Shown in pieces: positions 39,201 to 54,680 of a stretch of 64,000 nucleotides of DNA. Each line of letters opens with the position of its first letter. Position 1 is the stretch's first letter. This DNA is from Macrostomum hystrix (Eukaryota; Animalia; Platyhelminthes): assembly GCA_950097015.1 (NCBI GenBank), contig CATNEN010000011.1:2542001-2606000 (forward strand), read 5' to 3'. The notes beneath the pieces were generated by a model. The model was not told the DNA's origin. It saw only the letters and a list, made by a program, of their open reading frames with translations, and ran no database searches. The position numbers and the translations under genes are program-made.

Positions 39201-39996
39201 GTGTGTCATTGACAGTGTGGCATGTCAAGTTGTTGTTATGTTTCAGAAAGCATATGACTTAGAAAAGCAGAAACCTGTTCGGGCAAGTTGTCTTGTAAAA
39301 TTTACATCACAAAAATCAGACAGAAAGCAGACAACTAAATACAGTTTTCGTATGTCTAACTATATAGAATTCAGATAATAAAAGTCCAGTTATTGTGGTT
39401 ATTTTTTTCCTAAAATTGTTTGTTTACTAGTAATTGCGCATGCACTAGTAGGTGTGCCATTAAATAGTTTCTGGCCGCATAATATGACAACAAATAATGT
39501 TCTCGTTACTTAATTGTTTCGATACATACTATATACTGTCAAATTTTAGAACGCAACAAATAATTACTTCGTATTTGGATGTTTAAATATGCAAAGAAGA
39601 ACTCATGAAAGTGACTAGAATGTGTTGCACAAGGTTAGACATATCAAAATAGTGTTATCCTATAGAATAGGAGAGGTAAACAGGATCACACAAGTGTGTA
39701 CCAAGGACCCCTACTGTACATACAGAAAACAGTAAACAAGTGGTCTTCCTACGTTAATAAATCTTTCTAGAAACAGTGTCCCGTCCTTCTTCTTCTAGTG
39801 GTCCATGGTGAGTCCATTTGACCAGACTAACTCATTGTCAGGCAGTCCACATCGTTGTTGCACTTAGGGTGTAAGTTAATCCATGGTCTCACCGCACATT
39901 GGCAAAGAACGACTTTGGTGAGAAGGAATTAGGATGAAGGTTCAACATAAGGTCATTGTCTCGATCAATAAACTCTGTCCGAGTGATTCGAGTCTG

Positions 39997-42900
39997 TCAT
40001 CCTTTGAATACATCCGGAGCCGAGAACAGAATGGCGCAGGTTGCGATGACGGTGAAGCAGGAGAACAGGATGAGGCACAGCCGGTCCACAACTCTGGCTG
40101 CGAACTTCCACTCGCTGCTTACTTCACCGTCGGCAACGTCGTCTGAAATTTTCTGCGTTATGATGCGCAACTCGTGCACAATGGACTCCAGGTCGCTGCG
40201 GACACTGCAGGGCTGCTGTTGTAGTAGAAACTGGCCATTCGGATGCTGCTGCTGCTGCTGCTGCTGCTGTTGTTGCTGCACGTCGTCATAAACTGGCGGC
40301 AGTCTGGAAGTGGCCGCCGCAGCCGCGGCTCGGAAATTGTCCTCCAAATCCAGGACGTTCGCCAGCAGCGACTTCGACGATCGTTCGCGCAGTTCCAGCG
40401 GCGCCGCGTGCTCCGCGGCCAGCAGCTCCCGGTGATGCTCGGCGAAACCGGAGGCTGCCGAGGCGCTGGAGCGGAAGGCGCCCATCTTTGAGCCACCGCC
40501 GCCGCCACCTGCGGCGAAACTGCTGCGAGTTCGGCGACGTCGCAATCGTATCGGCTCAGCGTCTTCGTCTCTACGCAGCCGGCGCATGCAGAGAATGCTG
40601 GCCAGATAGGTGCAAATGAACTGACGGACCTGCAGATTGGGTTGGACACAGCACCTGTTAGACAGGAGCCCTACCTGTTAAACAGGATCCCTACCTGTTA
40701 GACAGGAACCCTACCTGTTAGTCAAGCACTCTACTTGTTATACAGGTGTTAGGCTAACGACTAAGTTAAGAATGTCACGTGTTAGACAAGTACTTTTAGT
40801 AATTTTTAGGAGGTGTTTTATTATTGACTCACCCAGTTAGGAATGGGGTGTGATTCAGCATCCCTGTGATGATAATTGAGCACAATGACAGTGAAGACAA
40901 CCGATAAGCTGCACATGATCATTGTGCAAGCAAAGTACATGCCTGAAATTTTCAAAGGATTCGAAATATTTCTTTAATTTGATACCATAGTGATCGATTT
41001 GATAATAAGGCGATAAAATCTGCTTAGTAAAAGTACAATGATGTTCAATTACTAACCAACATTATTCTAGGACACTTTTGTAGGAAAACGCATTTCATGG
41101 TACTTTCAGTAGATGTCCGTTGTTAAATATTAAAACAAGAAAATAATGAAGTTTTAAGATCGTAAATTCAACACGAGTATAGGGAGTGTCTGAAATGGCT
41201 GGTAGGCCATGGTGTCGTGCTTGGCCAGGTACCGCTAGCCAATTAGGACCTCAGAGAACTATGTTACTTAGAAAAGGTTTCGGAGGCTGGCTTCGCTGAA
41301 AACGGCGCTACGGAGATAAACTTATATTTTTGGAAGTTTATTCAAAGCTCTTTTTCTGTGTAACTAACCCAAAATGTTGCTCCGATAAATTTTACAAAGA
41401 TTTCAGCTTTTAAAGTTTATCTTTATACTATCTTATTCTTTACTAACGGTAGGACTACCAAGCCATGTTGCCGCCCGTTTTAATACCAGGTCGAATTCCC
41501 CCCTGAAGTTATTTTTGGCAGCGGCTGAATGGTAACAGCGTTGAGTGGTGTCTAATTGGTTGACAGACTAGCCGATGGTGTCCTGTGGTTGAGCTGAGCC
41601 TAGTATTTAGGTTTGATCAGTGAAATGGGAGACATTCGCGTCAGGGTGTCCATAGTGCCTAGTTCAGTTCCATCTGTTGTAGCCTTTGGAGGTCCAGCAA
41701 ATCCGTCTAGATAAAGGTAGGTGACCACCGAAGACGGAGATGATGCAGGCACATTCGGGTGCCATGCTAATCAATTTTGAAGGCCTGGCAAGGCCGCACT
41801 GAGGCGCAGTGCTAATTCGTGTATAGGGGTGTATGAAATACATAAGCGCTTATAGGAAAAATCTGACCTTAGGCCAGAACGATTGAATGTCTCGACGGTC
41901 TTGAAATAGTTGTTTTTATAAATTAAGCTTGATAAAAAGCTAATACAATCAAATAAAGTCGCGAAATTTGTCCCAGAAAGATCGTGTAAATTTTTTAATT
42001 CCCGTAGTGCATTTTCGGCGAAAATAAACCAGCCTCTTAAACTTTTCTAAGAAACATCGATTTCCCGTTCCGACCAATTTTAAAAAATGCTAAAGCGGAT
42101 TTTGCTCACCGATCACTGGTACAGAGTCTGAGGTAGGCGGCATGGCCTCAGCAACCATCATTAGAAAAACGGTCAACGATAGTAGGATAGTCACACCTGC
42201 GTCGCGTTAACAATCAAAATAATTTTCTACATTTGACCCGTCACAATTTGTTATAATTCCATTAATGAACACCGGAAATTGTGGACCAGCGAGCAAGCGA
42301 CAACAAAAAAACGAAAAAAACAAAAAAACAAAAAAGTAAATACAACACCGAAAATTTCACCTTAATTCTCGCGTGTAAAAATGCATTCCAGCAAGGTTCT
42401 TACCAATGAGAGGCAGAGCCTCAGATGTCTGCGGCATTGCGTCCGCCACGAGCAGTAAAAACATGGTCAGCGATAGCAGAATTGTGACGCCTGCGTCGAA
42501 ATTTAGTTAATTGTGCTTTGTGCGTTGTGCGTTGTGTAATGAGTTCAATTTTATCTTAGCGAAACATTCTGAGGAGGTTCAGTTTCTGGTTTGAGTTTCC
42601 TAGAAACATGCAATTTTTTAAAAATTTCTGCCGTTTTAAAACTCAAGCCCGTTTTTCCTTCTACTGATTCGAGAAAATTTCGCTGTTGCTTCATTCTATC
42701 CCTTATCTAATCTCTCGCCGTTGCTTCATTCTATCCCTTATCAAATCTCTCGCCATTGCTTCATTCTATCCCTTATCAAATCTCTAGCCGTTGCTACATT
42801 CTATCCCTTATCCAATCTCTCGCCGTTGCTACATTCTATCCCTTATCTAATCTCTCGCCGTTGCTTCATTCTATCCCTTATCAAATCTCTCGCCGTTGCT

Positions 42901-45900
42901 TCATTCTATCCCTTATCAAATCTCTCGCCATTGCTTCATTCTATCCCTTATCAAATCTCTAGCCGTTGCTACATTCTATCCCTTATCCAATCTCTCGCCG
43001 TTGCTACATTCTATCCCTTATCTAATCTCTCGCCGTTTCTTCATTCTATCCCTTATCCAATCTCTCGCCGTTGCTTCATTCTATCCCTTATCAAATCTCT
43101 AGCCGTTGCTACATTCTATCCCTTATCCAATCTCTCGCCGTTGCTACATTCTATCCCTTATCTAATCTCTCGCCGTTTCTTCATTCTATCCCTTATCAAA
43201 TCTCTAGCCGTTGCTACATTCTATCCCTTATCCAATCTCTCGCCGTTGCTACATTCTATCCCTTATCTAATCTCTCGCCGTTTCTTCATTCTATCCCTTA
43301 TCAAATCTCTCGCCGTTGCTACATTCTATCCCTTATCTAATCTCTCGCCGTTGCTACACTCTATCCCTTATCAAATCTCTCGCCGTTGCTACATTCTATC
43401 CCTTATCAAATCTCTCGCCGTTGCTACATTCTATCCCTTATCTAATCTCTCGCCGTTGCTACATTCTATCCCTTATCTAATCTCTCGCCGTTGCTACATT
43501 CTATCCCTTATCAAATCTCTCGCCGTTGCTACATTCTATCCCTTATCTAATCTCTCGCCGTTTCTTCATTCTATCCCTTATCAAATCTCTAGCCGTTGCT
43601 ACATTCTATCCCTTATCTAATCTCTCGCCGTTGCTACATTCTATCCCTTATCTAATCTCTCGCCGTTGCTACATTCTATCCCTTATCAAATCTCTCGCCG
43701 TTGCTACATTCTATCCCTTATCTAATCTCTCGCCGTTGCTACATTCTATCCCTTATCAAATCTCTCGCCGTTGCTTCATTCTATCCCTTATCCAATCTCT
43801 CGCCGTTGCTACATTCTATCCCTTATCAAATCTCTCGCCGTTGCTTCATTCTATCCCTTATCAAATCTCTCGCCGTTGCTTCATTTTATCCCTTATCAAA
43901 TCTCTCGCCGTTGATTCATTCTATCCCTTATCAAATCTCTCACCGTTGCTCCATTCTATCCCTTATCCAATCTCTCGCCGTTGTTTTATTATTTTTCTTA
44001 TCCAATCTCTCGCCGTTGCTTTATTATTTTTCTTATCCAATCTCTCGCCGTTGCTTTATTATTTTTCTTATCCAATCTCTCGCCGTTGCTTCATTCTATC
44101 CCTTATCCAATCTCTTCCCGTTGCTTTATTATTTTTCTTATCCAATCTCTCGCCGTTGCTTCATTCTATCCATTATCCAATCCCTCGCCGTGGGATATTT
44201 TCTTTAATTTTTTAGTAAGCTTGGCGCGAAGTTTAAGCTGCAATATCAGCGATCAGTTATAGTCAGTGGATTATATCGAATATGCATTGTATTTTTGGTA
44301 TGATTGCGCATTTAAAAAATATAGTTGTGAAAAAATTCCAGAAGAGGTTGTAGCCTAGTGGTTAGGGCGTCGGACTCACGACTTGAAGGTCGGGGGTTCG
44401 ATTCCCGACTCCACTGGAACAATTTGCGTCCTTTAGCAAGACACTTAACTCTGCATTGCTTCAGTTCACCCAGCTGTTAAATGAGTACCAGCATCAGCTG
44501 GGATAATTGAAGGTGGGTGTGGCGTCCCCCCAGTCCGTGGACTGAACAGCTGTACGCAGCCTTCAGATGCGCCGCGCATTAGCTGCGGCTGTGCTGTCGG
44601 CTGCACATCTGACCCAATTGGGGCAGGTGTAATCAATTATTATCAATTATTATTATTGTATGCAAGCATTGAAATTGGTGATACCAGTTGCTAACTGTTT
44701 TTGTTTTACTGGCCCGTAGATTAAAACAGTCTGGAAAACGATTTACTGTCGCCATTGTTAATATAATTCAAGTAATAACAGCTGGAAAGGGGTAGGCTTA
44801 TATGCTTGATTAATACTCTTTAGGTTTAGTTTATTTATTAAGTCATCGTAGAGTAAAGTCCTAATGAAATTACTGCACTTATCTAATAGATAATGCGACT
44901 ACACGATTTCAAAGAGGCAAAATTTCTGTCTAACAGGTCAGTATCCATATCTAACAGGTCAGTATCCATATCTAACAGGTCAGTTCCCATATCTAACAGG
45001 TCAGTATCCATATCTAGCAGGTCAGAACCCATATCTAACAGGTCAGTATCCATATCTAGAAGGTCAGAACCCATATCTAATAGGTCAGTATCCATATCTA
45101 ACAGGTCAGAACCCATATCTAACAGGTCAGTATCCATATCTAGAAGGTCAGAACCCATATCTAACAGGTCAGTATCCATATCTAACAGGTCAGTATCCAT
45201 ATCTAACAGGTCAGAACCCATATCTAGCAGGTCAGTGTCCATATCTAACAGGTCAGTATCCATATCTAACAGGTCAGTATCCATATCTAACAGGTCAGTG
45301 TCCATATCTAACAGGTCAGAACCCATATCTAGCAGGTCAGTGTCCATATCTAACAGGTCAGAACACATATCTAACAGGTCAGTGTCCATATCTAACAGGT
45401 CAGTGTCCATATCTAACAGGTCAGTATCCATATCTAACAGGTCAGTGTCCATATCTAACAGGTCAGTGTCCATATCTAACAGGTCAGTATCCATATCTAA
45501 CAGGTCAGTATCCATATCTAACAGGTCAGTGTCCATATCTAACAGGTCAGTATCCATATCTAACAGGTCAGTATCCATATCTAACAGGTCAGTATCCATA
45601 TCTAACAGGTCAGTATCCATATCTAACAGGTCAGTGTCCATATCTAACAGGTCAGTATCCATATCTAACAGGTCAGTATCCATATCTAACAGGTCAGCAT
45701 CCATATCTAGCAGGTCAGTATCCATATCTAGCAGGTCAGAACCCATATCTAACAGGTCAGTATCCATATCTAACAGGTCAGAACCCATATCTAGCAGGTC
45801 AGTGTCCATATCTGACTGGTTTTTATGTTCATTATGTTGCGTCATTGCGGTAAATCACAGGCACAATACAACAACCGCCTCACCTAGCGATATCTTCTCT

Positions 45901-48900
45901 CCAGCATCCGGTGGCAGCATGAAAGTTAGCAGGGCCATAGATGAGATCAGAACGCATGGAATGATGAGGTTGAAGCCGTAGTACAGCGTCCTCCGGCGTA
46001 TCTTGATCCAGTACTTCAGATCGACGAATGGAAACGGACAGCAGTCGTACACTAAGGCGGTTCTAATTCCGGGCATTCCTGAGATAAACAAATGTTTTTT
46101 ATCTGCGTAATTTATGATGCACATACAAATTTGACAATTCATTTATTCCAGAAAGTCAGCTTTGACCCCTGTTCCTTCAGGAAGTCCGGTTTCATCCCCT
46201 GTTCCTTCAGGAAGTCTGGTTTCATCCCCTGTTCCTTCAGGAAGTCCGGTTTCATCCCCTGTTCCTTCAGGAAGTCCGGTTTCATCCCCTGTTCCTTCAG
46301 GGAGTCTGGTTTCATCCCCTGTTCCTTCAGGAAGTCTGGTTTCATCCCCTGTTCATTCAGGAAGTCCGGTTTCATCCACTGTTCCTTCAGGAAGTCGGAA
46401 GTCTGGTTTCATCCCCTATTCATTCAGGAAGTCCGGTTTCATCCCCTGTTCCTTCAGGAAGTCTGGTTTCATCCCCTGTTCCTTCAGGAAGTCTGGTTTC
46501 ATCCTCTGTGCCTTCAGGAAGTCGGAAGTCTGGTTTCATCCCCTATTCATTCAGGAAGTCCGGTTTCATCCCCTGTTCCTTCAGGAAGTCTGGTTTCATC
46601 CCCTGTTCATTCAGGAAGTCCGGTTTCATCCCCTGTTCCTTCAGGAAGTCTGCTTTCATCCCCTGTTCATTCAGGAAGTCTGGTTTCATCCCCTGTGCCT
46701 TCAGGAAGTCCGGTTTCATCCCCTGTTCATTCAGGAAGTCCGGTTTCATCCCCTGTTCCTTCAGGAAGTCTGGTTTCATCCCCTGTTCCTTCAGGAAGTC
46801 TGCTTTCATCCCCTGTTCCTTCAGGAAATATGGTTTCATCCCCTGTTCCTTCAGGAAGTCTGGTTTCATTCCCTGTTCCGTCAGGATGTCTGGTTTCATC
46901 TCCTGTTCCTTCAGGAAGTCCGGTTTCATCCCCTGTTCCTTCAGGAAGTCTGCTTTCATCCCCTGTTCCTTCAGGAAGTCCGGTTTCATCCCCTGTTCCT
47001 TCAGGAAGTCCGGTTTCATCCCCTGTTCCTTCAGGAAGTCCGGTTTCATCCCCTGTTCCTTCAGGAAGTCCGGTTTCATCCCCTGTTCCTTCAGGAAGTC
47101 CGGTTTCATCCCCTGTTCCTTCAGGGAGTCTGGTTTCATCCCCTGTTCCTTCAGGAAGTCTGGTTTCATCCCCTGTTCATTCAGGAAGTCCGGTTTCATC
47201 CACTGTTCCTTCAGGAAGTCGGAAGTCTGGTTTCATCCCCTATTCATTCAGGAAGTCCGGTTTCATCCCCTGTTCCGTCAGGATGTCTGGTTTCATCCCC
47301 TGTTCCTTCAGGAAGTCTGGTTTCATTCTTTGTTCCTTCAGGAAGTCTGGTTTCATTCTTTGTTCCTTCAGGAAGTCTGGTTTCATTCTTTGTTCCTTCA
47401 GGAAGTCTGGTTTCATCCCCTGTTCCTTCAGGAAGTCTGGTTTCATCCCCTGTTCCTTCAGGAAGTCTGGTTTCATCCCCTGTTCATTCAGGAAGTCTGG
47501 TTTCATCCCCTGTTCCGTCAGGATGTCTGGTTTCATCCCCTGTGCCTTCAGGAAGTCTGCTTTCATCCCCTGTTCCTTCAGGAAGTCTGGTTTCATTCCC
47601 TGTTCCTTCAGGAAGTCTGCTTTCATCCCCTGTTCCTTCAGGAAGTCTGGTTTCATCCCCTGTTCCTTCAGGAAGTCTGGTTTCATCCCCTGTTCCTTCA
47701 GGAAGTCTGGTTTCATTCCCTGTTCCTTCAGGAAGTCTGCTTTCATCCCCTGTTCCTTCAGGAAGTCTGCTTTCATCCCCTGTTCCTTCAGGAAGTCTGG
47801 TTTCATCCCCTGTTCCTTCAGGAAGTCTGGTTTCATCCCCTGTTCCTTCAGGAAGTCTGCTTTCATTCCCTGTTCCTTCAGGAAGTCTGGTTTCATCCCC
47901 TGTTCCTTCAGGAAGTCTGCTTTCATCCCCTGTTCCTTCAGGAAGTCCGGTTTCATCCCCTGTTCCTTCAGGAAGTCTGGTTTCATCCCCTGTTCCTTCA
48001 GGAAGTCCGGTTTCATCCCCTGTTCCTTCAGGAAGTCTGGTTTCATCCCCTGTTCCTTCAGGAAGTCTGGTTTCATCCCCTGTTCCTTCAGGAAGTCTGG
48101 TTTCATCCCCTGTTCCTTCAGGATGTCTGGTTTCATTCCCTGTTCCTTCAGGAAATATGGTTTCATCCCCTGTTCCTTCAGGAAATGATATTTAAACTGC
48201 GTTTTTTATATTAAAACTAAAATTATCCCTATGTTAATGTTAATTAATGTTATTAACAATTAACAAACGGTTTTCGAATCGATAATCAATACTTCTTCAA
48301 AAGAGTTATCGGTAATATATATAGTGTAATTTGTGTACGGGTGCTGTCTGTGTGCTTGTGTCGTATTTTCATTGATATTCGCTCAGGCGCTTAAGTTGAA
48401 TAATAATTTTGTGTCCTCAAATCGGTGACATTTTTGCTGCTGGAACGCTTTTGTGGTGCGACAAGACCGGAAAAATAATGAATTTTTTCTTTCTTAGAAA
48501 TTTCTGATTCAATTTTTAACAAATTTCGTGCTACGAGTAGTAACATCAAGCAACAATTAACTAATTAAAAGAAATATGTTTAAATATTGACGTATTCTAT
48601 TTAGCAATTTTTCCAGAATAGATGAATATATAAAAATATATGAAAACCATAAAAAAGTAAAAAGACTAACATTTAAGAAAGTAACGAAGTTTTGGAAAAA
48701 GTAACTTTTTTCAATATTTTAAATATTTCACTTATTTCACTTATTTTGTGCAAGCCGTGGAGTATAAAATATTTTACGCATATGCGACAGAAGTAGCTTT
48801 GCTTGCCGTCCATAATTTCCCGACTTTTGTTATAATTAAATCGCTTAATTATAACAAAACAATTTGAAACGAATCTGCCGCATACCAAAGCTAACTTTCT

Positions 48901-51900
48901 CTCCAGCATCCGGTGGAATGATGAAGCTTAACAAAGCTAAAGACGACAGAAACGAGCACGGACCAACCAGATTAAATACGTAATACAGCTTGCGCCTACG
49001 GATGAGCAGGTGAAATTTTAAATCGATGAACGGATGGGGACAGCAGTCGTAGATGATGCTGGTTCGGATCCCGGGCAGTCCTGCAAGCGTGTGGTGTCAA
49101 ACTGTTGTTGAGTCTATAGCGTAAAAAATTGATAATTTCTGGCATCTTTTCTTGACGTCAGCATCGTCGTCGAGATTCAGCGATTCATTCAGAAAAATGA
49201 AAAATGTGAAAAATTTGACATAGCCCGTGATCTTTCTACAGTTCAGCTGATGTTCTAGATGACACCTACCTGTAGTCCATGAAGTTGGGCCAGACTTACA
49301 GGCAGTGGCACAACTGCTGCTATTACAAATTTGTTTCCAAACCTGGTGTACAACCGTTCAGTCCATGGACTGGGGGGCTGCAACATCGACCCAAATTTTA
49401 CAGCTAAAAAATGTTGAATACAAGAAAAAGGTTAAGAGATTTTCTCTGCTACGCCACGTACCCAACACCCAATAATCCCAGCTAATGCTGGCACCCGTTT
49501 ATCAGCTGGGTGAACTGAATCAATGCAGAGTTAAGTGTCTTGCTAAATGGCACAAATTGTTTCAGTCGAGTCGGGAATCGAACCCTTGACCTTCAAGTCC
49601 GACGCCCTAACCACCTGGGTTTTTTAAATAGGCATTTGAGCAGGAACTTACCCTCTAGATTCCATTCGCCACTCTCAACGTAGGTGGTGACATCTCCTGA
49701 GCCCTTCTCAGAGCAGCCCTCCGGGTCCTGCAGGATCTTCTCAGTCGTATCCAAGCTGGCGTTGTCGCATTTGAATCTCAAATCAACTGTGCCGCCATCG
49801 TATGACCAAGAGCCGAATTTCAATTCGCACTTTTGCGTATCAAATGGAAACCAGGTAATATCTATTTTGCAGGTAGATTTGAACATTCCAGGCGGTATGT
49901 AGTTCATTGAACCCGAGTGATTTATGACCACATTAGTCGGGAATGTGCCATCGAATTTCTCATCGGCACTGGAAGTTTGAAAAGCAATTTGTTGACTAAT
50001 TCTCAGTTTTAATTACGCGCGTATTTCGATTAAATTATTAGATTACTACTTTAAGTAGCGCAACTCGCCTATTGTAAAGTAGAATGTCAGGTTTCCAAAC
50101 GCGACTCGGATCGATATTAATCTTCGTGATGTTGCCATATTCAGCTGGATTCCATTTGAAATGATAGTCGCTCCACGTCTGGAATTTTAAATAAACGTTT
50201 ATTGCTCTTGTCTTTCATTACATCTGTTATTTTTAGTTGTGTCATTTTTATTTCCAGATCTAACAAGATGCTTTATGCACATGCGTTCGCGTACATCTTA
50301 CGCTGTACGTAACAGATGCTATTTTTAGTAACAGGACAACCGTGCCTAGGGTCCTCCTCTGAGTCATCTGACGTCATATTCTATTTTTAGAAAATGTGTT
50401 GCCTTATGTAATGAACGAATATTTTAGGTTGAGTTTATGTGCTTTGTGTAAGATTTCTGCTACGTCTGCAGCAGTAAGCTGTGCTTAAACTTCAGGTAGG
50501 TGAAATTAGCTCAAAAATACTTATTGAACACATAAACATTACTGTCTGACCATGAATCGAAGGAAAAAAATAATAACGCTAAGCAAACATTAGATCCGAG
50601 CCACTCTGCATAATTTAGGCTTGCTGAAGCTCAAGAAAGGCCAACATTAATTGAGTCTGATCAAACATTATATCAGCTGTGTAGTCGATAAGTATTAGTA
50701 CTCAGGAGGCAGCTCACCAGATCCAGCCAGATGTTTGAGAACAGAATCTGGTTCTTTTCGTCCTGCATAAAAATGGGAAGCGGGAGTTTACAGATGGGAT
50801 CATTTTGCATTAGATTTACATGATTAACGCAAGTCAGTAATTCAGTCAATCACTGTAAGCATTATCAGTTTATGCTATACAAAGCCCAGAAAGCATGTTT
50901 TGATTCAGTATTTTTCTGCTAGCATTTCTTCCAACTAACTACGAGCTAAAAAAGCAAATAAATGATTTGACTAAAGTTTGATATGGCATTCATTTCTGTT
51001 CTCTCGTATGCTTTGCACCAGCTTGTGAACCATTGCTACAAAAGTTACGAGTATGTTACACCAATGGTTTAGCTGAGGCATTCATGCAAAACAGATTGAG
51101 TTGGCAGTGATTCCTTCAGCAAACTGTTCCATACCATTGCTCAAATGCACAGCTGACTGGAAAAGTATTTCTTAGTAAGATTTATTGGATAGCAAAAATT
51201 TGGATTAAAGAAACCAGCTGTTACTCGTACATATACTTTCACGTTTCAGAACTTTCAAAAAACTAAATTTTTGTTAGATAAACCGAAAAATAATTAAAAC
51301 GAATCGAGTTAATACGAAATTGTGTTACTAAGAACTGGATTCTTCTAAAAGCGCAATGTTTCTACGAACTGGATTCTTCTAAAAGCGCAATGTTTCTAAG
51401 AACTGGAGCTTCTAAAAGCGCAATGTTTCTAAGAACTGGATTCTTCTAAAAGCGCAATGTTTCTAAGAACTGGATTCTTCTAAAAGCGCAATGTTTCTAA
51501 GAACTGGATTCTTCTAAAAGCGCAATGTTTCTAAGAACTGGATTCTTCTAAAAGCGCAATGTTTCTAAGAACTGGATTCTTCTAAAAGCGCAATGTTTCT
51601 AAGAACTGGAGCTTCTAAAAGCGCAATGTTTCTAAGAACTGGATTCTTCTAAAAGCGCAATGTTTCTAAGAACTGGATTCTTCTAAAAGCGCAATGTTTC
51701 TAAGAACTGGATTCTTCTAAAAGCGCAATGTTTCTAAGAACTGGATTCTTCTAAAAGCGCAATGTTTCTAAGAACTGGATTCTTCTAAAAGCGCAATGTT
51801 TCTAAGAATTGGATTCTTCTAAAAGCGCAATGTTTCTAAGAACTGGATTCTTCTAAAAGCGCAATGTTTCTAAGAACTGGATTCTTCTAAAAGCGCAATG

Positions 51901-52649
51901 TTTCTAAGAAATGGAGCTTCTAACGGCGCAATGTTTCTAAGAACTGGATTCTTCTAAAAGCGCAATGTTTCTAAGAACTGGATTCTTCTAAAAGCGCAAT
52001 GTTTCTAAGAACTGGATTCTTCTAAAGCGCAATGTTTCTAAGAACTGGATTCTTCTAAAAGCGCAATGTTTCTACGAACTGGATTCTTCTATAAAAGCGC
52101 AATGTTTATAAGAACTGGATTCTTCTAAAAGCGCAATGTTTCTAAGAACTGGATTCTTCTAAAAGCGCAATGTTTCTAAGAACTGGAGCTTCTAAAAGCG
52201 CAATGTTTCTAAGAAATTGAGCTTCTAACGGCGCAATGTTTCTAAGAATTGGGTTCTTATAAAAGCGCAATATTTGTAAAAATTCAACTGAGAGTAGAAA
52301 CCAATAGTCACTCATTTAACTTAGCCCAGCTCAGATCGAGTATAATTCTAAGGTTGAGCACACTCACAACGTCGATAATCTGCTGCAGAGACACCTTGAA
52401 CCAGACGTAGAGCACAGCCGAATCGTTCTCAACCGGTCGCTCCATCGGGTTGTGCTTCTTGTTCTCGTCCTTGTTCTCGAATAGTTCCCGAAGGAGTCGC
52501 TTCTCGTGCCTGCCAGCCAGGGCGCCTTCGCGGATTATTGTGAATTGGGGGCTAAATTGATTGGCATAGTTTACTTGGAGAATCACGGCTGAGGTACGTG
52601 ACAGCACCAGCTCAGAGATAATCAATGATGGGCCAAGTAAGCCTTGCAT
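39997..52649 (-). CDS. Nicotinic acetylcholine receptor alpha subunit, alpha7 type. Exons about 52649-52368, 50762-50718, 50178-50069, 49968-49652, [49080-48886 or 46078-45884], [42490-42404 or 42196-42110], 40942-40833, 40629-39997
   Basis: Motifs [30 protein letters not shown], Cys-loop [15 protein letters not shown], loop B WSY, vicinal CC, GEK ring and TM4 [13 protein letters not shown]. Exon sizes 45/110/195/87/110 match the CHRNA7-type structure. The signal-peptide junction is uncertain. Confidence 0.93.
40650..40745. repeat. Five-copy 20-bp repeat (acctgttagacaggagccct) in the last nAChR intron
   Basis: acctgttag-like units at 40654, 40674, 40694, 40714 and 40734. Confidence 0.75.
41452..41905. 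mobile_element. Truncated inverted copy of the 33212-33803 element in an nAChR intron
   Basis: Begins TA|ggactaccaag and is colinear in reverse complement with about 33345-33803. Confidence 0.75.
42110..42196 (-). CDS. nAChR alternative TM2 exon 8b (87 nt): [29 protein letters not shown]
   Basis: cgacgcag|GT ... ATCG|gtgag, phase 1-1, open frame. Confidence 0.9.
42404..42490 (-). CDS. nAChR alternative TM2 exon 8a (87 nt): [29 protein letters not shown]
   Basis: cgacgcag|GC ... ATTG|gtaag, phase 1-1, open frame. Confidence 0.85.
42680..44180. repeat. 35-bp minisatellite (tctcgccgttgcttcattctatcccttatcaaatc) between exons 7b and 8a
   Basis: Direct periodicity, decaying toward 44180. Confidence 0.96.
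44345..44655 (+). mobile_element. Full-length SINE family 1 copy with (ATT)n-like tail
   Basis: gttgtagcctagtggttagggcgtcggactcacgacttgaaggtcgggggttcgattccc head, followed by the CORE-like block and tail. Confidence 0.92.
44930..45815. repeat. 21-bp minisatellite (tccatatctaacaggtcagta) just downstream of exon 7b
   Basis: Direct periodicity, about 42 copies. Confidence 0.97.
45884..46078 (-). CDS. nAChR alternative exon 7b (195 nt; loop C, TM1, M1-M2 linker): [65 protein letters not shown]
   Basis: tctcag|GA ... CTAG|gtgag, phase 1-1. Confidence 0.92.
46165..48185. repeat. 30-bp minisatellite (ttcaggaagtctggtttcatcccctgttcc), about 67 copies, between exons 7a and 7b
   Basis: Direct periodicity. 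Confidence 0.97.
48886..49080 (-). CDS. nAChR alternative exon 7a (195 nt): [65 protein letters not shown]
   Basis: ttgcag|GA ... TTTG|gtatg, phase 1-1, no stops. It is absent from the ORF track because it lacks a start codon. Confidence 0.85.
49355..49613 (-). mobile_element. Diverged SINE family 1 copy upstream of exon 7a
   Basis: cagctgggtgaactgaatcaatgcagagttaagtgtcttgc...gggaatcgaaccc matches the family. Confidence 0.8.
51330..52265. repeat. 34-bp minisatellite (aagaactggattcttctaaaagcgcaatgtttct), nAChR intron
   Basis: Direct periodicity. Confidence 0.96.
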
Positions 52650-52914: not shown

Positions 52915-53810
52915 AGTTTCAGGCTGACAATTAGTTACGGAGTTCACAAGTTTCAGGCTGACAATTAGTTACGGAGTTCACAAGTTTCAGGCTGACAATT
53001 AGTTACGGAGTTCACAAGTTTCAGGCTGACAATTAGTTACGGAGTTCACAAGTTTCAGGCTGACAATTAGTTACGGAGTTCACAAGTTTCAGGCTGACAA
53101 TTAGTTACGGAGTTCACAAGTTTCAGGCTGACAATTAGTTACGGAGTTCACAAGTTTCAGGCTGACAATTAGTTACGGAGTTCACAAGTTTCAGGCTGAC
53201 AATTAGTTACGGAGTTCACAAGTTTCAGGCTGACAATTAGTTACGGAGTTCACAAGTTTCAGGCTGACAATTAGTTACGGAGTTCACAAGTTTCAGGCTG
53301 ACAATTAGTTACGGAGTTCACAAGTTTCAGGCTGACAATTAGTTACGGAGTTCACAAGTTTCAGGCTGACAATTAGTTACGGAGTTCACAAGTTTCAGGC
53401 TGACAATTAGTTACGGAGTTCACAAGTTTCAGGCTGACAATTAGTTACGGAGTTCACAAGTTTCAGGCTGACAATTAGTTACGGAGTTCACAAGTTTCAG
53501 GCTGACAATTAGTTACGGAGTTCACAAGTTTCAGGCTGACAATTAGTTACGGAGTTCACAAGTTTCAGGAATGACAATTAGTTACGGAGTTCACAAGTTT
53601 CAGGCTGACAATTAGTTACGGAGTTCACAAGTTTCAGGCTGACAATTAGTTACGGAGTTCACAAGTTTCAGGCTGACAATTAGTTACGGAGTTCACAAGT
53701 TTCAGGCTGACAATTAGTTACGGAGTTCACAAGTTTCAGGCTGACAATTAGTTACGGAGTTCACAAGTTTCAGGCTGACAATTAGTTACGGAGTTCACAA
53801 GTTTCAGGAT
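52915..53810. repeat. Near-perfect 34-bp minisatellite (agtttcaggctgacaattagttacggagttcaca)
   Basis: About 26 almost invariant copies. Confidence 0.97.
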
Positions 53811-54680
53811 TGACAAATTTCGAGTTTGAGTAGTTTTGCGGCTGACAAGTTTCGGGATAAAGAAGTCGTTTTTGGGTTTGAGAAGTTTCAGGTTGACAAG
53901 TTTCGGGGTTGACAAGTTTCGAGATTGACAAGTTTCGGGATTGACAAGTTTCCGGATTGACAAGTTTCGGTATTGACAAGTTTCGGGATTGACAAGTTTC
54001 CGGATTGACAAGTTTCGAGATTGACAAGTTTCGGTATTGACAAGTTTCGGGATTGACAAGTTTCGGTATTGACAAGTTTCGGTATTGACAAGTTTCGGTA
54101 TTGACAAGTTTCGGTATTGACAAGTTTCGGGATTGACAAGTTTCCGGATTGACAAGTTTCGAGATTGACAAGTTTCGGTATTGACAAGTTTCGGGATTGA
54201 CAAGTTTCGGTATTGACAAGTTTCGGGATTGACAAGTTTCCGGATTGACAAGTTTCGAGATTGACAAGTTTCGGGATTGACAAGTTTCCGGATTGACAAG
54301 TTTCGAGATTGACAAGTTTCGGTATTGACAAGTTTCGGGATTGACAAGTTTCGGTATTGACAAGTTTCGGTATTGACAAGTTTCCGGATTGACAAGTTTC
54401 GAGATTGACAAGTTTCGGGATTGACAAGTTTCGGGATTGACATGTTTCGTGATTGACAAGTTTCGGGATTGACAAGCTTCGGGATTGACAAGCTTCGGGA
54501 TTGACTAGTTTCGGGATTGACTAGTTTCGGGATTGACAAGTTTCCGGATTGCGAAGTTTCGGGATTGAAAAGTTTCCGGATTGAGAAGTTTCGAGGTTGA
54601 CAAGTTTCGGGATAGACAAGTTTCGGGGTTGACAAGCTTCGGGATTAACAAGTTTCAGGATTAACAAGTTTCAGGATTAA
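53810..54680. repeat. 16-bp minisatellite (gattgacaagtttcgg)
   Basis: Direct periodicity, abutting the 34-bp array. Confidence 0.95.

Follow-up and report, generated by a model that had tools for sequence, protein, structure and literature searches.

Two tandem exon pairs, probably used one copy at a time, in an alpha7-type nicotinic acetylcholine receptor gene of Macrostomum hystrix

Gene structure and classification

The window, that is, the whole 64-kb stretch of Macrostomum hystrix DNA analysed here, was found to contain exons 2–10 of a nicotinic acetylcholine receptor (nAChR) alpha subunit gene on the minus strand (Table 1), the map starting at exon 2. Pfam analysis revealed the Neur_chan_LBD domain on exon 5/6 (E 3.7e-23), where the 13-residue Cys-loop motif also lies, and the Neur_chan_memb domain on exons 7b and 10. 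The vicinal Cys-Cys of alpha-type subunits was present as YDCC in loop C of both 7a and 7b, and both exons ended in PPDAGEK, the signature of a cation-selective pore (GEK ring, -1'/0'). Searches against the PDB gave 62–80 bits for alpha7 and at most 54 bits for other subunits, and the named database matches of the gene were alpha-7, acr-16 or alpha6. The closest protein was the Macrostomum lignano "alpha-7" (P0001), with approximately 90% identity. Judged by these sequence characters, the gene is an nAChR of the alpha7/ACR-16/insect alpha5-7 type. Its loop F, encoded by exon 5/6, carries an insertion of approximately 21 residues with two extra Cys, and a motif scan of this gene revealed no second copy of exon 3.

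Table 1. Coordinates of the exons of the nAChR gene and of the intron features in the window
Feature	Position	Strand	Description
Exon 2	52368..52553	-	N-terminal ligand-binding domain, ends ...QQIIDV; tblastn with P0151, P0160, P0174; 5' limit approximate; GTGAGT donor after 52368
Exon 3	50718..50762	-	45 nt, one copy
Exon 4	50069..50178	-	110 nt, GC donor (GCGAGT); frame checked
Exon 5/6, fused	49652..49968	-	317 nt; Cys-loop; tblastn, Pfam
Exon 7a	48886..49080	-	195 nt; divergent type (RRRK...)
7a-7b intron minisatellite	46160..48190	.	30-nt unit, occupies most of the 2807-nt intron
Exon 7b	45884..46078	-	195 nt; canonical type
7b-8a intron	42534..45845	.	Two minisatellites and a tRNA-like SINE copy
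Second, short-unit minisatellite in 7b-8a intron	~44883-45845		
tRNA-like SINE copy in 7b-8a intron	44344-44555		
35-nt minisatellite in 7b-8a intron	~42534-44260		
Exon 8a	42404..42490	-	87 nt; flatworm type
Exon 8b	42110..42196	-	87 nt; canonical protostome/alpha7 type
Exon 9	40833..40942	-	110 nt, TM3; exon 9-10 joint in RNA contigs of X3, X5
Exon 10, coding part	39997..40629	-	Cytoplasmic loop with poly-Q, TM4; stop 39997-39999; Pfam Neur_chan_memb

Structure of the two exon pairs

Re-reading of the sequence returned the four exons 7a, 7b, 8a and 8b with the positions, lengths and strand given in the preliminary description. All four are open, lie between AG and GT, and have phase 1-1, the open frame beginning two bases into each exon (phase 1 for the introns on either side). 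The donors are GTATGC (7a), GTGAGG (7b), GTAAGA (8a) and GTGAGC (8b), and the splice signals of 7a, which include the donor GTATGC and a poor pyrimidine tract, are the weakest of the four. The proposed arrangement, in which two exons of one alpha7-type gene were each duplicated separately and in tandem to give the order 7a-7b-8a-8b, was borne out; neighbouring homologous exons that match in length and phase and have their own splice sites were found here and also in an M. lignano paralog (L002), in Capitella (L004) and in a eukaryote contig (L001).

Both 7a (62.4 bits, E 3e-16) and 7b (79.6 bits, E 1e-21) aligned end to end with human alpha7 residues 178–241, while 8a (approximately 28 bits) and 8b (approximately 32 bits) aligned with residues 242–270. 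These bit scores agree with the earlier statement that in each pair the downstream copy is nearer to vertebrate alpha7 and the upstream copy more divergent. Within the pairs, DNA identity was only 63–68%; 7a and 7b differ at 23/64 residues, and 8a and 8b at 9/30, including pore positions 13', 16', 17' and 20'. Hallmarks of 8a are M13', L16', L17', D20' and PQTSEALP, and those of 8b are V13', M16', M17', E20' and PPTSDSVP.

Loop C, beta10, pre-M1 and TM1 are encoded by exon 7 together with pore positions -1' to 3', and exon 8 encodes TM2 from 4' on and the start of the M2-M3 linker. The TM1 half of 7b was 97% identical to those of Capitella and Lineus. The preliminary description held that the gene could vary both its agonist site and its pore. 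Differences at pore positions were indeed found in both pairs, but variation of the agonist site was overstated, since 7a and 7b share the loop C Tyr and the Cys-Cys, the main acetylcholine (ACh) contacts, and differ mostly in beta10, pre-M1 and TM1 and at positions 1' and 3' of the pore. All four combinations with a single exon 7 and a single exon 8 have an uninterrupted reading frame between exon 3 and the stop codon.

Transcript evidence and isoform use

RNA mapping covered 8a, 8b and exons 9–10 in four low-depth runs. The exon 9-10 junction could be confirmed in the RNA contigs. A contig of X5 (record 31) covered 8a and was spliced at the 8a acceptor, with 27 upstream letters unaligned. 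Its alignment passed this acceptor by exactly AG, the two letters in which 7b (..CTAG), unlike 7a (..TTTG), terminates; the contig thus fits a joint of 7b to 8a, a reading that depends on the 2-nt overhang. As the contig extends 5 nt into the intron past 8a, it comes from a partly processed transcript. For 8b, zero depth was recorded in the four runs, in which the neighbouring exons reached only a depth of 1–4. The M. lignano model P0154, which belongs to L002 and to the RNA-seq-derived GenBank annotation Mlig_3_7 (PMC5730564), consists of exon 6-7b-8a-9.

RNA and transcript support was found for the 7b-8a form only. This is the form seen in RNA; the divergent 8a seems to be the default in flatworms, and 7a most likely acts as a minority exon whose inclusion is regulated. 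The conservation of the exons and the analogy with the isoforms of Lineus suggest that 7a and 8b are used, that the copies of a pair exclude each other and that the "four receptors" of the preliminary description are made. Several database models include both copies (P0001, P0151 and many arthropod RefSeq models), so annotation alone is no proof of exclusion.

Conservation and alternative explanations

The paralog L002, which stems from an independent assembly, shows the order 7a-7b-8a-8b, the same exon lengths and AG/GT sites. Measured against this paralog at a near-saturated dS of 0.9–2.3, dN/dS was 0.10 for 7a, 0.06 for 7b, 0.10 for 8a and 0.03 for 8b. Dead pseudo-exons with neutral dN/dS, one outcome foreseen at the outset, were thus not what was found; these ratios indicate that each of the four exons is under purifying selection and that none is a dead copy. 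All four exon types are also present in the model of a third M. lignano paralog (P0151).

It is nevertheless conceivable, if improbable, that 7a and/or 8b are silent relics in the Macrostomum gene and that the gene never yields any form but 7b-8a, like the M. lignano paralog L003 and the trematode genes, in which 7a and 8b have been lost. The restriction of transcript support to 7b-8a and the weak splice signals of 7a speak for this, and loss does occur, as L003 and Paragonimus retain only a 7b and an 8a-type exon and 7a is visibly degenerate in a tubeworm-like contig (P0007). However, neither 7a nor 8b has lost its frame, length or splice sites; both are approximately 90% identical to their M. 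lignano counterparts and kept their low dN/dS against the paralog across a dS of approximately 2, with 8b the best conserved of the four. Moreover, one M. lignano model (P0156) joins a 7a-type exon straight to an 8b-type exon.

Routine co-inclusion of both copies would lengthen the subunit and repeat some of its segments, as happens in P0001 and P0151, two ab initio models. The frame would be kept, 195 and 87 being multiples of three, and both copies do stand together in many database models, including arthropod RefSeq models. Pentameric ligand-gated ion channel subunits, however, have an established four-helix topology, which a doubled TM1 or TM2 would break. The transcript-derived P0154 omits 7a and 8b, the X5 contig runs from an exon ending in AG (7b) to 8a and then into intron rather than into 8b, and the Lineus isoforms of equal length have one exon 7 each; co-inclusion as a routine is therefore very improbable. 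An assembly artefact, in which two paralogs or haplotypes were interleaved, hardly deserves belief even though the introns are full of minisatellites and, in M. lignano, the genome was duplicated recently and the assemblies are redundant (PMC5730564), because the same order, lengths and splice sites recur in the independent L002 contig, contrary to the misassembly of paralogs considered earlier, the 7a-7b order is also found in Lineus, Capitella and L001, and the copies, at the DNA identity given above, are far too different for haplotypes.

Proposed isoforms and exclusion mechanism

The locus is thus probably best explained by two tandem exon duplications with four working exons, of which one exon 7 and one exon 8 would enter each mRNA, giving up to four subunit isoforms. 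One copy per pair would be expected because a doubled or absent TM1 or TM2 breaks the four-helix topology. Differences among the isoforms would be concentrated in the TM1/TM2 core and in the lining of the pore (1', 3', 13', 16', 17', 20'), with little change in the ACh contacts, and the isoforms may differ in function.

As the preliminary description pointed out, neither the reading frame nor nonsense-mediated decay (NMD) can enforce exclusion with exons of 195 and 87 nt. Comparison of the introns and scoring of the fold gave no evidence of the active mechanism that it had called for. The introns between 7a and 7b (2807 nt) and between 8a and 8b (207 nt) are too long for steric hindrance; all four donors are of the GT type with no U12 consensus, which speaks against U2/U12 incompatibility; the fold z-score, +0.58, gave no sign of competing RNA pairing of the docking/selector kind; and no conserved intron blocks were found. 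Many mutually exclusive pairs have no known mechanism, so this result lowers none of the functional claims. Exclusion would most likely be achieved by splice-site competition together with trans-acting regulators, and mis-spliced products would be lost at the protein level.

A bolder and rather unlikely reading is that both cassettes may be very old in the protostome alpha7-type receptor and that their choice is coupled, 7a with 8b and 7b with 8a. The loop C/TM1 pair would then predate the nemertean/annelid/flatworm split, and the TM2 pair and the exon 8 variants of arthropods would go back to one origin. If the choice were coupled, one gene would give two co-adapted TM1/TM2 channel cores and not four free combinations.

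If one copy per pair is the rule, the paired cassettes would offer a natural experiment on TM1-TM2 co-adaptation, and many public gene models for alpha7-type receptors would wrongly fuse both copies. Alpha7-type nAChRs are drug targets, and insect alpha6 is the target of spinosad. In flatworm neurobiology and in work on anthelmintic targets, the receptor sequence would depend on exon choice.

Comparison with related genes

Exons 7, 8 and 9 of vertebrate CHRNA7 measure 195, 87 and 110 nt, as do those of the Macrostomum gene, whereas exons 5 and 6 are fused only in the latter. We know of no tandem alternative exon 7 or 8 in CHRNA7.

A 7a upstream of 7b was found in Capitella (L004), Owenia (P0168), Lineus (L005) and the eukaryote contig L001. 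The loop C/TM1 cassette, first presented as a feature of one gene, is thus common to nemertean, annelid and flatworm genes. In the phylogenetic analysis, the nine spiralian 7a copies all lay to the same side of a moderately supported branch (77/89.8 with the complete exon, 87/81 with its TM1 half), and the Lineus 7a grouped with the Macrostomum 7a (97/80). When the Lineus copy was left out of the tree, one common origin for the spiralian 7a copies came close to rejection (AU p 0.066, and 0.046 for the loop C half). The 7a copies may thus also have arisen by independent duplications with convergent changes in TM1; the exon 7 pair, which keeps its order across Nemertea, Annelida and Platyhelminthes, seems to be old.

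The alpha7-like gene of Lineus longissimus shares the 7a-7b order and the 7a hallmark residues (RRRK...), and also the pattern of use proposed here, in that isoforms of equal length in the X1-X6 set have one exon 7 each. The RefSeq isoforms X1–X4 and X6, which are automatic predictions, are all 480 aa long, and X3 and X6 swap 7b for 7a; no paper on these isoforms was found. The Lineus gene differs from the Macrostomum gene in its single exon 8 and in its paired exons 3 and 4. The annelids Capitella teleta (CAPTEDRAFT_221893) and Owenia fusiformis have tandem 7a-7b in the same order, those of Capitella being 195 nt each and flanked by AG/GT, but their exon 8, of the 8b type, is single, as it is in the nemertean, and their gene models co-include both exon 7 copies. 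The Capitella 7a-7b intron is only approximately 150 nt long, compared to 2807 nt in Macrostomum.

Models of pancrustacean alpha7-type genes (Timema, termites, locusts, Nilaparvata, barnacle, isopod and lobster) likewise carry a tandem exon 7 beside multiple exon 8 copies. In them the canonical exon 7 precedes the divergent one, the reverse of the Macrostomum order, and all models examined with two exon 7 copies co-include both. Since the pancrustacean copies group within the arthropods, their duplication is probably independent.

Insect alpha6 has mutually exclusive cassettes at exon 3 (3a/3b) and exon 8 (8a/8b/8c) (PMC1919356). It belongs to the same receptor subgroup as the Macrostomum gene, and its exon 8 is likewise 87 nt long, encodes TM2 from 4' together with the linker, has the same phase and occurs in tandem copies that the reading frame cannot police. 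One insect exon 8 type (..ADALPQTSEAIPLL) resembles the flatworm 8a and was its sister (83/80) in a tree of 30 columns; a flatworm 8a clade to which only Timema_8_4, the closest-looking insect copy, was added was not rejected (AU p 0.47). Two trematodes have a single exon 8, with which the Macrostomum 8a grouped (88/84.8), and the exon 8 pair is, on this sequence evidence, at least as old as the Macrostomum-trematode split. In P0258, a database entry under the name [quoted passage not shown], exon 8 is present twice, a sign that exclusion in the Dalpha6 system may be leaky.

Insect alpha6 belongs to another phylum, and exon 3 is paired there, as in Capitella and Lineus, while it is single in the Macrostomum gene. 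The exon 7 cassette, present in the Macrostomum gene, is not mentioned in the alpha6 papers searched, and the preliminary description, which knew of no described loop C/TM1 cassette, was not contradicted by any of the papers searched. The TM2 cassette occupies the site of the insect alpha6 exon 8 cassette and parallels that known case. Alternative exons of insect alpha6 shape receptor diversity and resistance. A conserved loop C/TM1 alternative exon, if true, would provide a second, undescribed axis of diversity beside the alternative TM2 in several worm phyla.

Gene structure and exon copies

The exon map of the receptor gene was built by tblastn, using as queries P0001 (a Macrostomum lignano protein model), a second M. 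lignano paralog, and Capitella and Lineus proteins. Reading and translation of the minus strand confirmed what the preliminary description had proposed for the four duplicated exons: each is open, is bordered by AG upstream and GT downstream, and lies in phase 1 on both sides, the frame opening two bases into the exon.

Exons of the alpha7-type receptor gene in the window
Feature	Position (nt)	Strand	Evidence
Exon 2	about 52553-52368	minus	tblastn
Exon 3, 45 nt	50762-50718	minus	tblastn
Exon 4, 110 nt, GC donor	50178-50069	minus	tblastn and sequence reading
Fused exon 5/6	49968-49652	minus	tblastn
Exon 7a, 195 nt	49080-48886	minus	sequence reading and translation
Exon 7b, 195 nt	46078-45884	minus	sequence reading and translation
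Exon 8a, 87 nt	42490-42404	minus	sequence reading and translation
Exon 8b, 87 nt	42196-42110	minus	sequence reading and translation
Exon 9, 110 nt	40942-40833	minus	tblastn
Exon 10, coding part	40629 to stop at 39997-39999	minus	tblastn

Both 7a and 7b align end to end with residues 178-241 of the human alpha7 chain, which comprise loop C, beta10, pre-M1, TM1 and the M1-M2 linker, while 8a and 8b align with residues 242-270, that is, TM2 and the start of the M2-M3 linker. The downstream copy of each pair had been described as the more canonical one, and the alignment scores against human alpha7 agree (79.6 bits for 7b and 62.4 bits for 7a; about 32 bits for 8b and about 28 bits for 8a). Ligand-binding and membrane domains were both found in the gene by Pfam, and all four combinations taking one exon 7 and one exon 8 keep the frame open to the stop. 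The best match of 7b among the protein representatives was P0001, a 481-residue protein named alpha-7 and approximately 90% identical to the window gene over exons 6-10; this match assigns the window to Macrostomum, a free-living flatworm genus.

Exons 7-9 of vertebrate CHRNA7 measure 195, 87 and 110 nt, the same sizes as in the window gene; exons 5 and 6, which are separate in the vertebrate gene, are fused here. An insertion of about 21 residues, two extra cysteines among them, lengthens loop F in the fused exon; it is common to the M. lignano paralogs but absent from the annelid and nemertean orthologs. The intron after exon 4 opens with GC (GCGAGT, 50067-50068) and would be a GC-AG intron if the boundary of the 110-nt exon 4 is right.

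Conservation of the four exon copies

An independent M. lignano contig holding the paralog Mlig026469 (L002) revealed all four exons with the order, lengths and AG/GT borders seen in the window. Synonymous sites between the two genes are near saturation (dS 0.9-2.3) and dN is low, giving dN/dS values of 0.10 for 7a, 0.06 for 7b, 0.10 for 8a and 0.03 for 8b. The preliminary description had named neutral dN/dS, together with a lack of reads splicing into 7a or 8a, as the mark of dead pseudo-exons; the values of 0.03-0.10 against this paralog indicate purifying selection. The reading of 7a and 8b as dead pseudo-exons is unlikely: such copies would not have stayed intact, as all four have, across a divergence with near-saturated dS. 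All four exon types are present in a third M. lignano paralog model (P0151), and in a further model (P0156) a 7a-type exon is joined straight to an 8b-type exon.

Real loss looks unlike the intact copies of the window. Only 7b and one 8a-type exon are retained in the M. lignano paralog Mlig029137 (L003) and in the trematode Paragonimus. Short degenerate repeats that look like the beginning of exon 8 (GVMIMLSHTVMIMLSH..) could be seen at 13982-14107 of L003, just upstream of its single 8a-type exon. In P0007, an ENA contig whose 7b is identical to that of the tubeworm Ridgeia, 7a is strongly degenerate (PC to PS, GEK to GEN) and has a very long branch.

Distribution of the exon 7 pair in other animals

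A 64-residue 7b query matched twice in each top protein representative, which pointed to other genes with a tandem exon 7. In Capitella teleta (L004), Owenia (P0168), a eukaryote contig (L001) and the nemertean Lineus longissimus (L005), 7a precedes 7b. Among the hallmarks shared by the 7a copies are RRRK for RRRT, YY[V/I]F for YYGF and Leu for the Met of SSM; the 7a copies of Lineus and Macrostomum share an identical 11-residue ending. Each of the Lineus RefSeq isoforms X1-X4 and X6 has 480 residues, with 7a replacing 7b in X3 and X6, so that exon 7 use is either/or at the annotation level in this species.

The exon 7 tree including Lineus 7a placed all nine spiralian 7a copies on the same side of one branch (whole-exon support 77/89.8), a split also recovered from the TM1 half (87/81); Macrostomum and Lineus 7a grouped together with support of 97/80. 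In the tree without Lineus, 7a of Macrostomum clustered with 7b of the same genus, and a single clade of 7a copies came close to rejection (AU p 0.066, with p 0.046 for the loop C half and p 0.39 for the TM1 half). In the loop C half of exon 7 the signal is thus one of lineage, through co-evolution or gene conversion, and in the TM1 half one of exon type. As judged from these trees, the spiralian 7a and 7b probably go back to one ancient duplication, a reading that we hold with reasonable rather than high confidence.

Pancrustacean alpha7-type gene models also show a tandem exon 7, but with the canonical copy first, and the copies group within arthropods; this order and grouping point to a separate duplication. 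All of the examined pancrustacean models and arthropod RefSeq isoforms with two exon 7 copies co-include both and are uninformative on exclusive use. Exon 7 and/or exon 8 copies were likewise found joined in tandem in P0001, P0151, P0160, P0168 and many arthropod RefSeq isoforms. Such co-inclusion in public models probably reflects prediction errors arising from in-frame duplicated exons.

Distribution of the exon 8 pair in other animals

Annelids, the nemertean and Limulus each possess one exon 8 of the 8b type, identical among them, and trematodes possess a single exon 8 of the 8a type. The Macrostomum 8a copies form one group with the trematode exons (88/84.8), which places the 8a/8b duplication before the split of Macrostomum and trematodes. 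This flatworm 8a group was sister to one insect exon 8 variant type (..ADALPQTSEAIPLL) with support of 83/80 over only 30 columns, and adding Timema_8_4, the closest-looking insect copy, alone to the flatworm 8a clade was not rejected (AU p 0.47). A shared origin of 8a/8b with the arthropod exon 8 cassette is, from these alignments, possible but unproven.

Transcript evidence

Five small RNA runs of one study contain parts of the gene, and their contigs were aligned to 39900-42530, an interval with exons 8a to 10, where depth over the receptor exons was 1-4. The 7a-7b and 7b-8a introns, upstream of this interval, are long minisatellite arrays. The joint of exons 9 and 10 was confirmed in two runs, skipping 40630-40832 with GT..AG on the minus strand. 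A 121-nt contig of one run (X5) covers 42399-42492 with no mismatch and carries 27 more upstream letters that are absent from the window, which shows that the contig is spliced at the 8a acceptor. It overruns this acceptor by AG, which fits the end of 7b (..CTAG) and not that of 7a (..TTTG). At its other end the contig reads 5 nt into the intron (GTAAG, differing from GTGTG at 8b and GCATG at exon 9), so the molecule was still unspliced downstream of 8a. No coverage of 8b was seen in any of four runs, which at a depth of 1-4 is weak evidence.

RNA-seq and transcriptome assemblies underlie the GenBank annotation of the Mlig_3_7 assembly (PMC5730564), in which the model for L002 (P0154) joins exons 6-7b-8a-9. 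The 7b-8a form is therefore observed in two paralogous genes, in the window gene by way of the 2-nt contig overrun; the same combination is what L003 and the trematode retain. A protein search for Macrostomum transcript fragments with the 7a-8b junction gave no match above 60% identity, and the Capitella 7a region as a protein query returned only P0160 and P0001, with no close Macrostomum transcript fragment.

RNA contig depth at 41484-41923, in the intron separating 8b from exon 9, was approximately 400-1600, compared to 1-4 on the receptor exons. The contigs there are many and short and extend into unrelated sequence; the signal resembles that of a highly expressed repeat family or other abundant RNA within the intron.

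Residue differences and their likely effect

The copies 7a and 7b differ at 23 of 64 residues, and 8a and 8b at 9 of 30, including pore positions 13', 16', 17' and 20' and also the linker. In loop C, 7a and 7b share the Tyr, the Cys-Cys pair and the Phe at the second aromatic position; their differences concentrate after loop C and in TM1, with V/I at 1' and F/L at 3' in addition. Variation of both the agonist site and the pore had been suggested earlier; the differences at 1', 3', 13', 16', 17' and 20' bear on the pore part, and the agonist-site part is overstated, the key loop C residues being the same. Beyond loop C, the exon 7 product forms beta10, pre-M1, TM1 and the cytoplasmic mouth of the pore. 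From established pLGIC architecture, exon choice likely affects gating, desensitisation, conductance, assembly or modulator sites of the TM1/TM2 core more than agonist recognition.

Intron repeats and how exclusion may be maintained

A four-helix subunit would have to take one exon from each pair. We agree with the earlier argument that frame and NMD are unable to enforce this; of the active mechanism it called for, no sign of any known kind was seen in the introns, donors, folding or intron conservation. Steric hindrance was rejected for the window gene, in which the 7a-7b intron (2807 nt) and the 8a-8b intron (207 nt) are too long; it is conceivable in L001, with a 7a-7b intron of about 75 nt. 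No U12-type splice sites were seen by eye at the four exons, all donors being ordinary GT types. The region from 8a through the intron to 8b folds no better than shuffles (z = +0.58), and blastn of the window against L002 aligned exons only, with no conserved intron blocks.

The weakest splice signals among the four exons belong to 7a (donor GTATGC, poor pyrimidine tract). The 7a donors of L002, Capitella and L001 deviate from GTRAGT at +4 (GTAGGG or GTAGGT); the same holds for 7b in L002 and Capitella. Our best guess is that 7b would be the default and 7a the regulated exon, and that exclusion may be leaky, with misassembled products disposed of.

A tRNA-like element occurs in two copies of opposite orientation, at 44344-44555 (+) and 49348-49614, with longest arms of 130 nt that are 89% complementary. 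The two bracket the exon 7 pair, being located in the introns that precede 7a and follow 7b, and they could pair in the pre-mRNA and loop out both exon 7 copies; the element is absent from L002. Rfam analysis of 39500-50500 gave the tRNA-like SINE as the sole match, with the tRNA hit at 44344-44413. Long minisatellite arrays with units of 30 nt, 35 nt and a shorter one occupy the receptor introns at 46160-48190, 42534-44260, 44883-45845 and about 53750-54650; being open in several frames, they produce long spurious ORFs.

Comparison with known cassettes

Mutually exclusive use of exons 3 and 8 in insect alpha6, mentioned in the preliminary description, is documented (PMC1919356). The TM2 cassette is of this known kind; the phylum is new. 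Exclusion may be leaky in the known insect system as well, as suggested by the two exon 8 copies of P0258, a database entry under the name of a Drosophila Dalpha6 variant.

For the loop C/TM1 cassette, no description was found in searchable papers, as had been supposed; yet it is visible in the public annotation of Lineus and is not special to the window gene. The 'alternative exon 7' of Bombyx was rejected as a precedent, since it is part of another gene, alpha8, and spans TM2/TM3.

A second exon 3 copy was sought in the window gene and none was found, unlike the Capitella and Lineus orthologs, which have tandem exon 3 copies as does insect alpha6. The Lineus ortholog also has tandem exon 4 copies, alternative in its RefSeq isoforms. 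Both of these duplications were either lost by the window gene or never present in it. Exon 7 and exon 8 cassettes side by side, as in the window gene, also occur in arthropod gene models.
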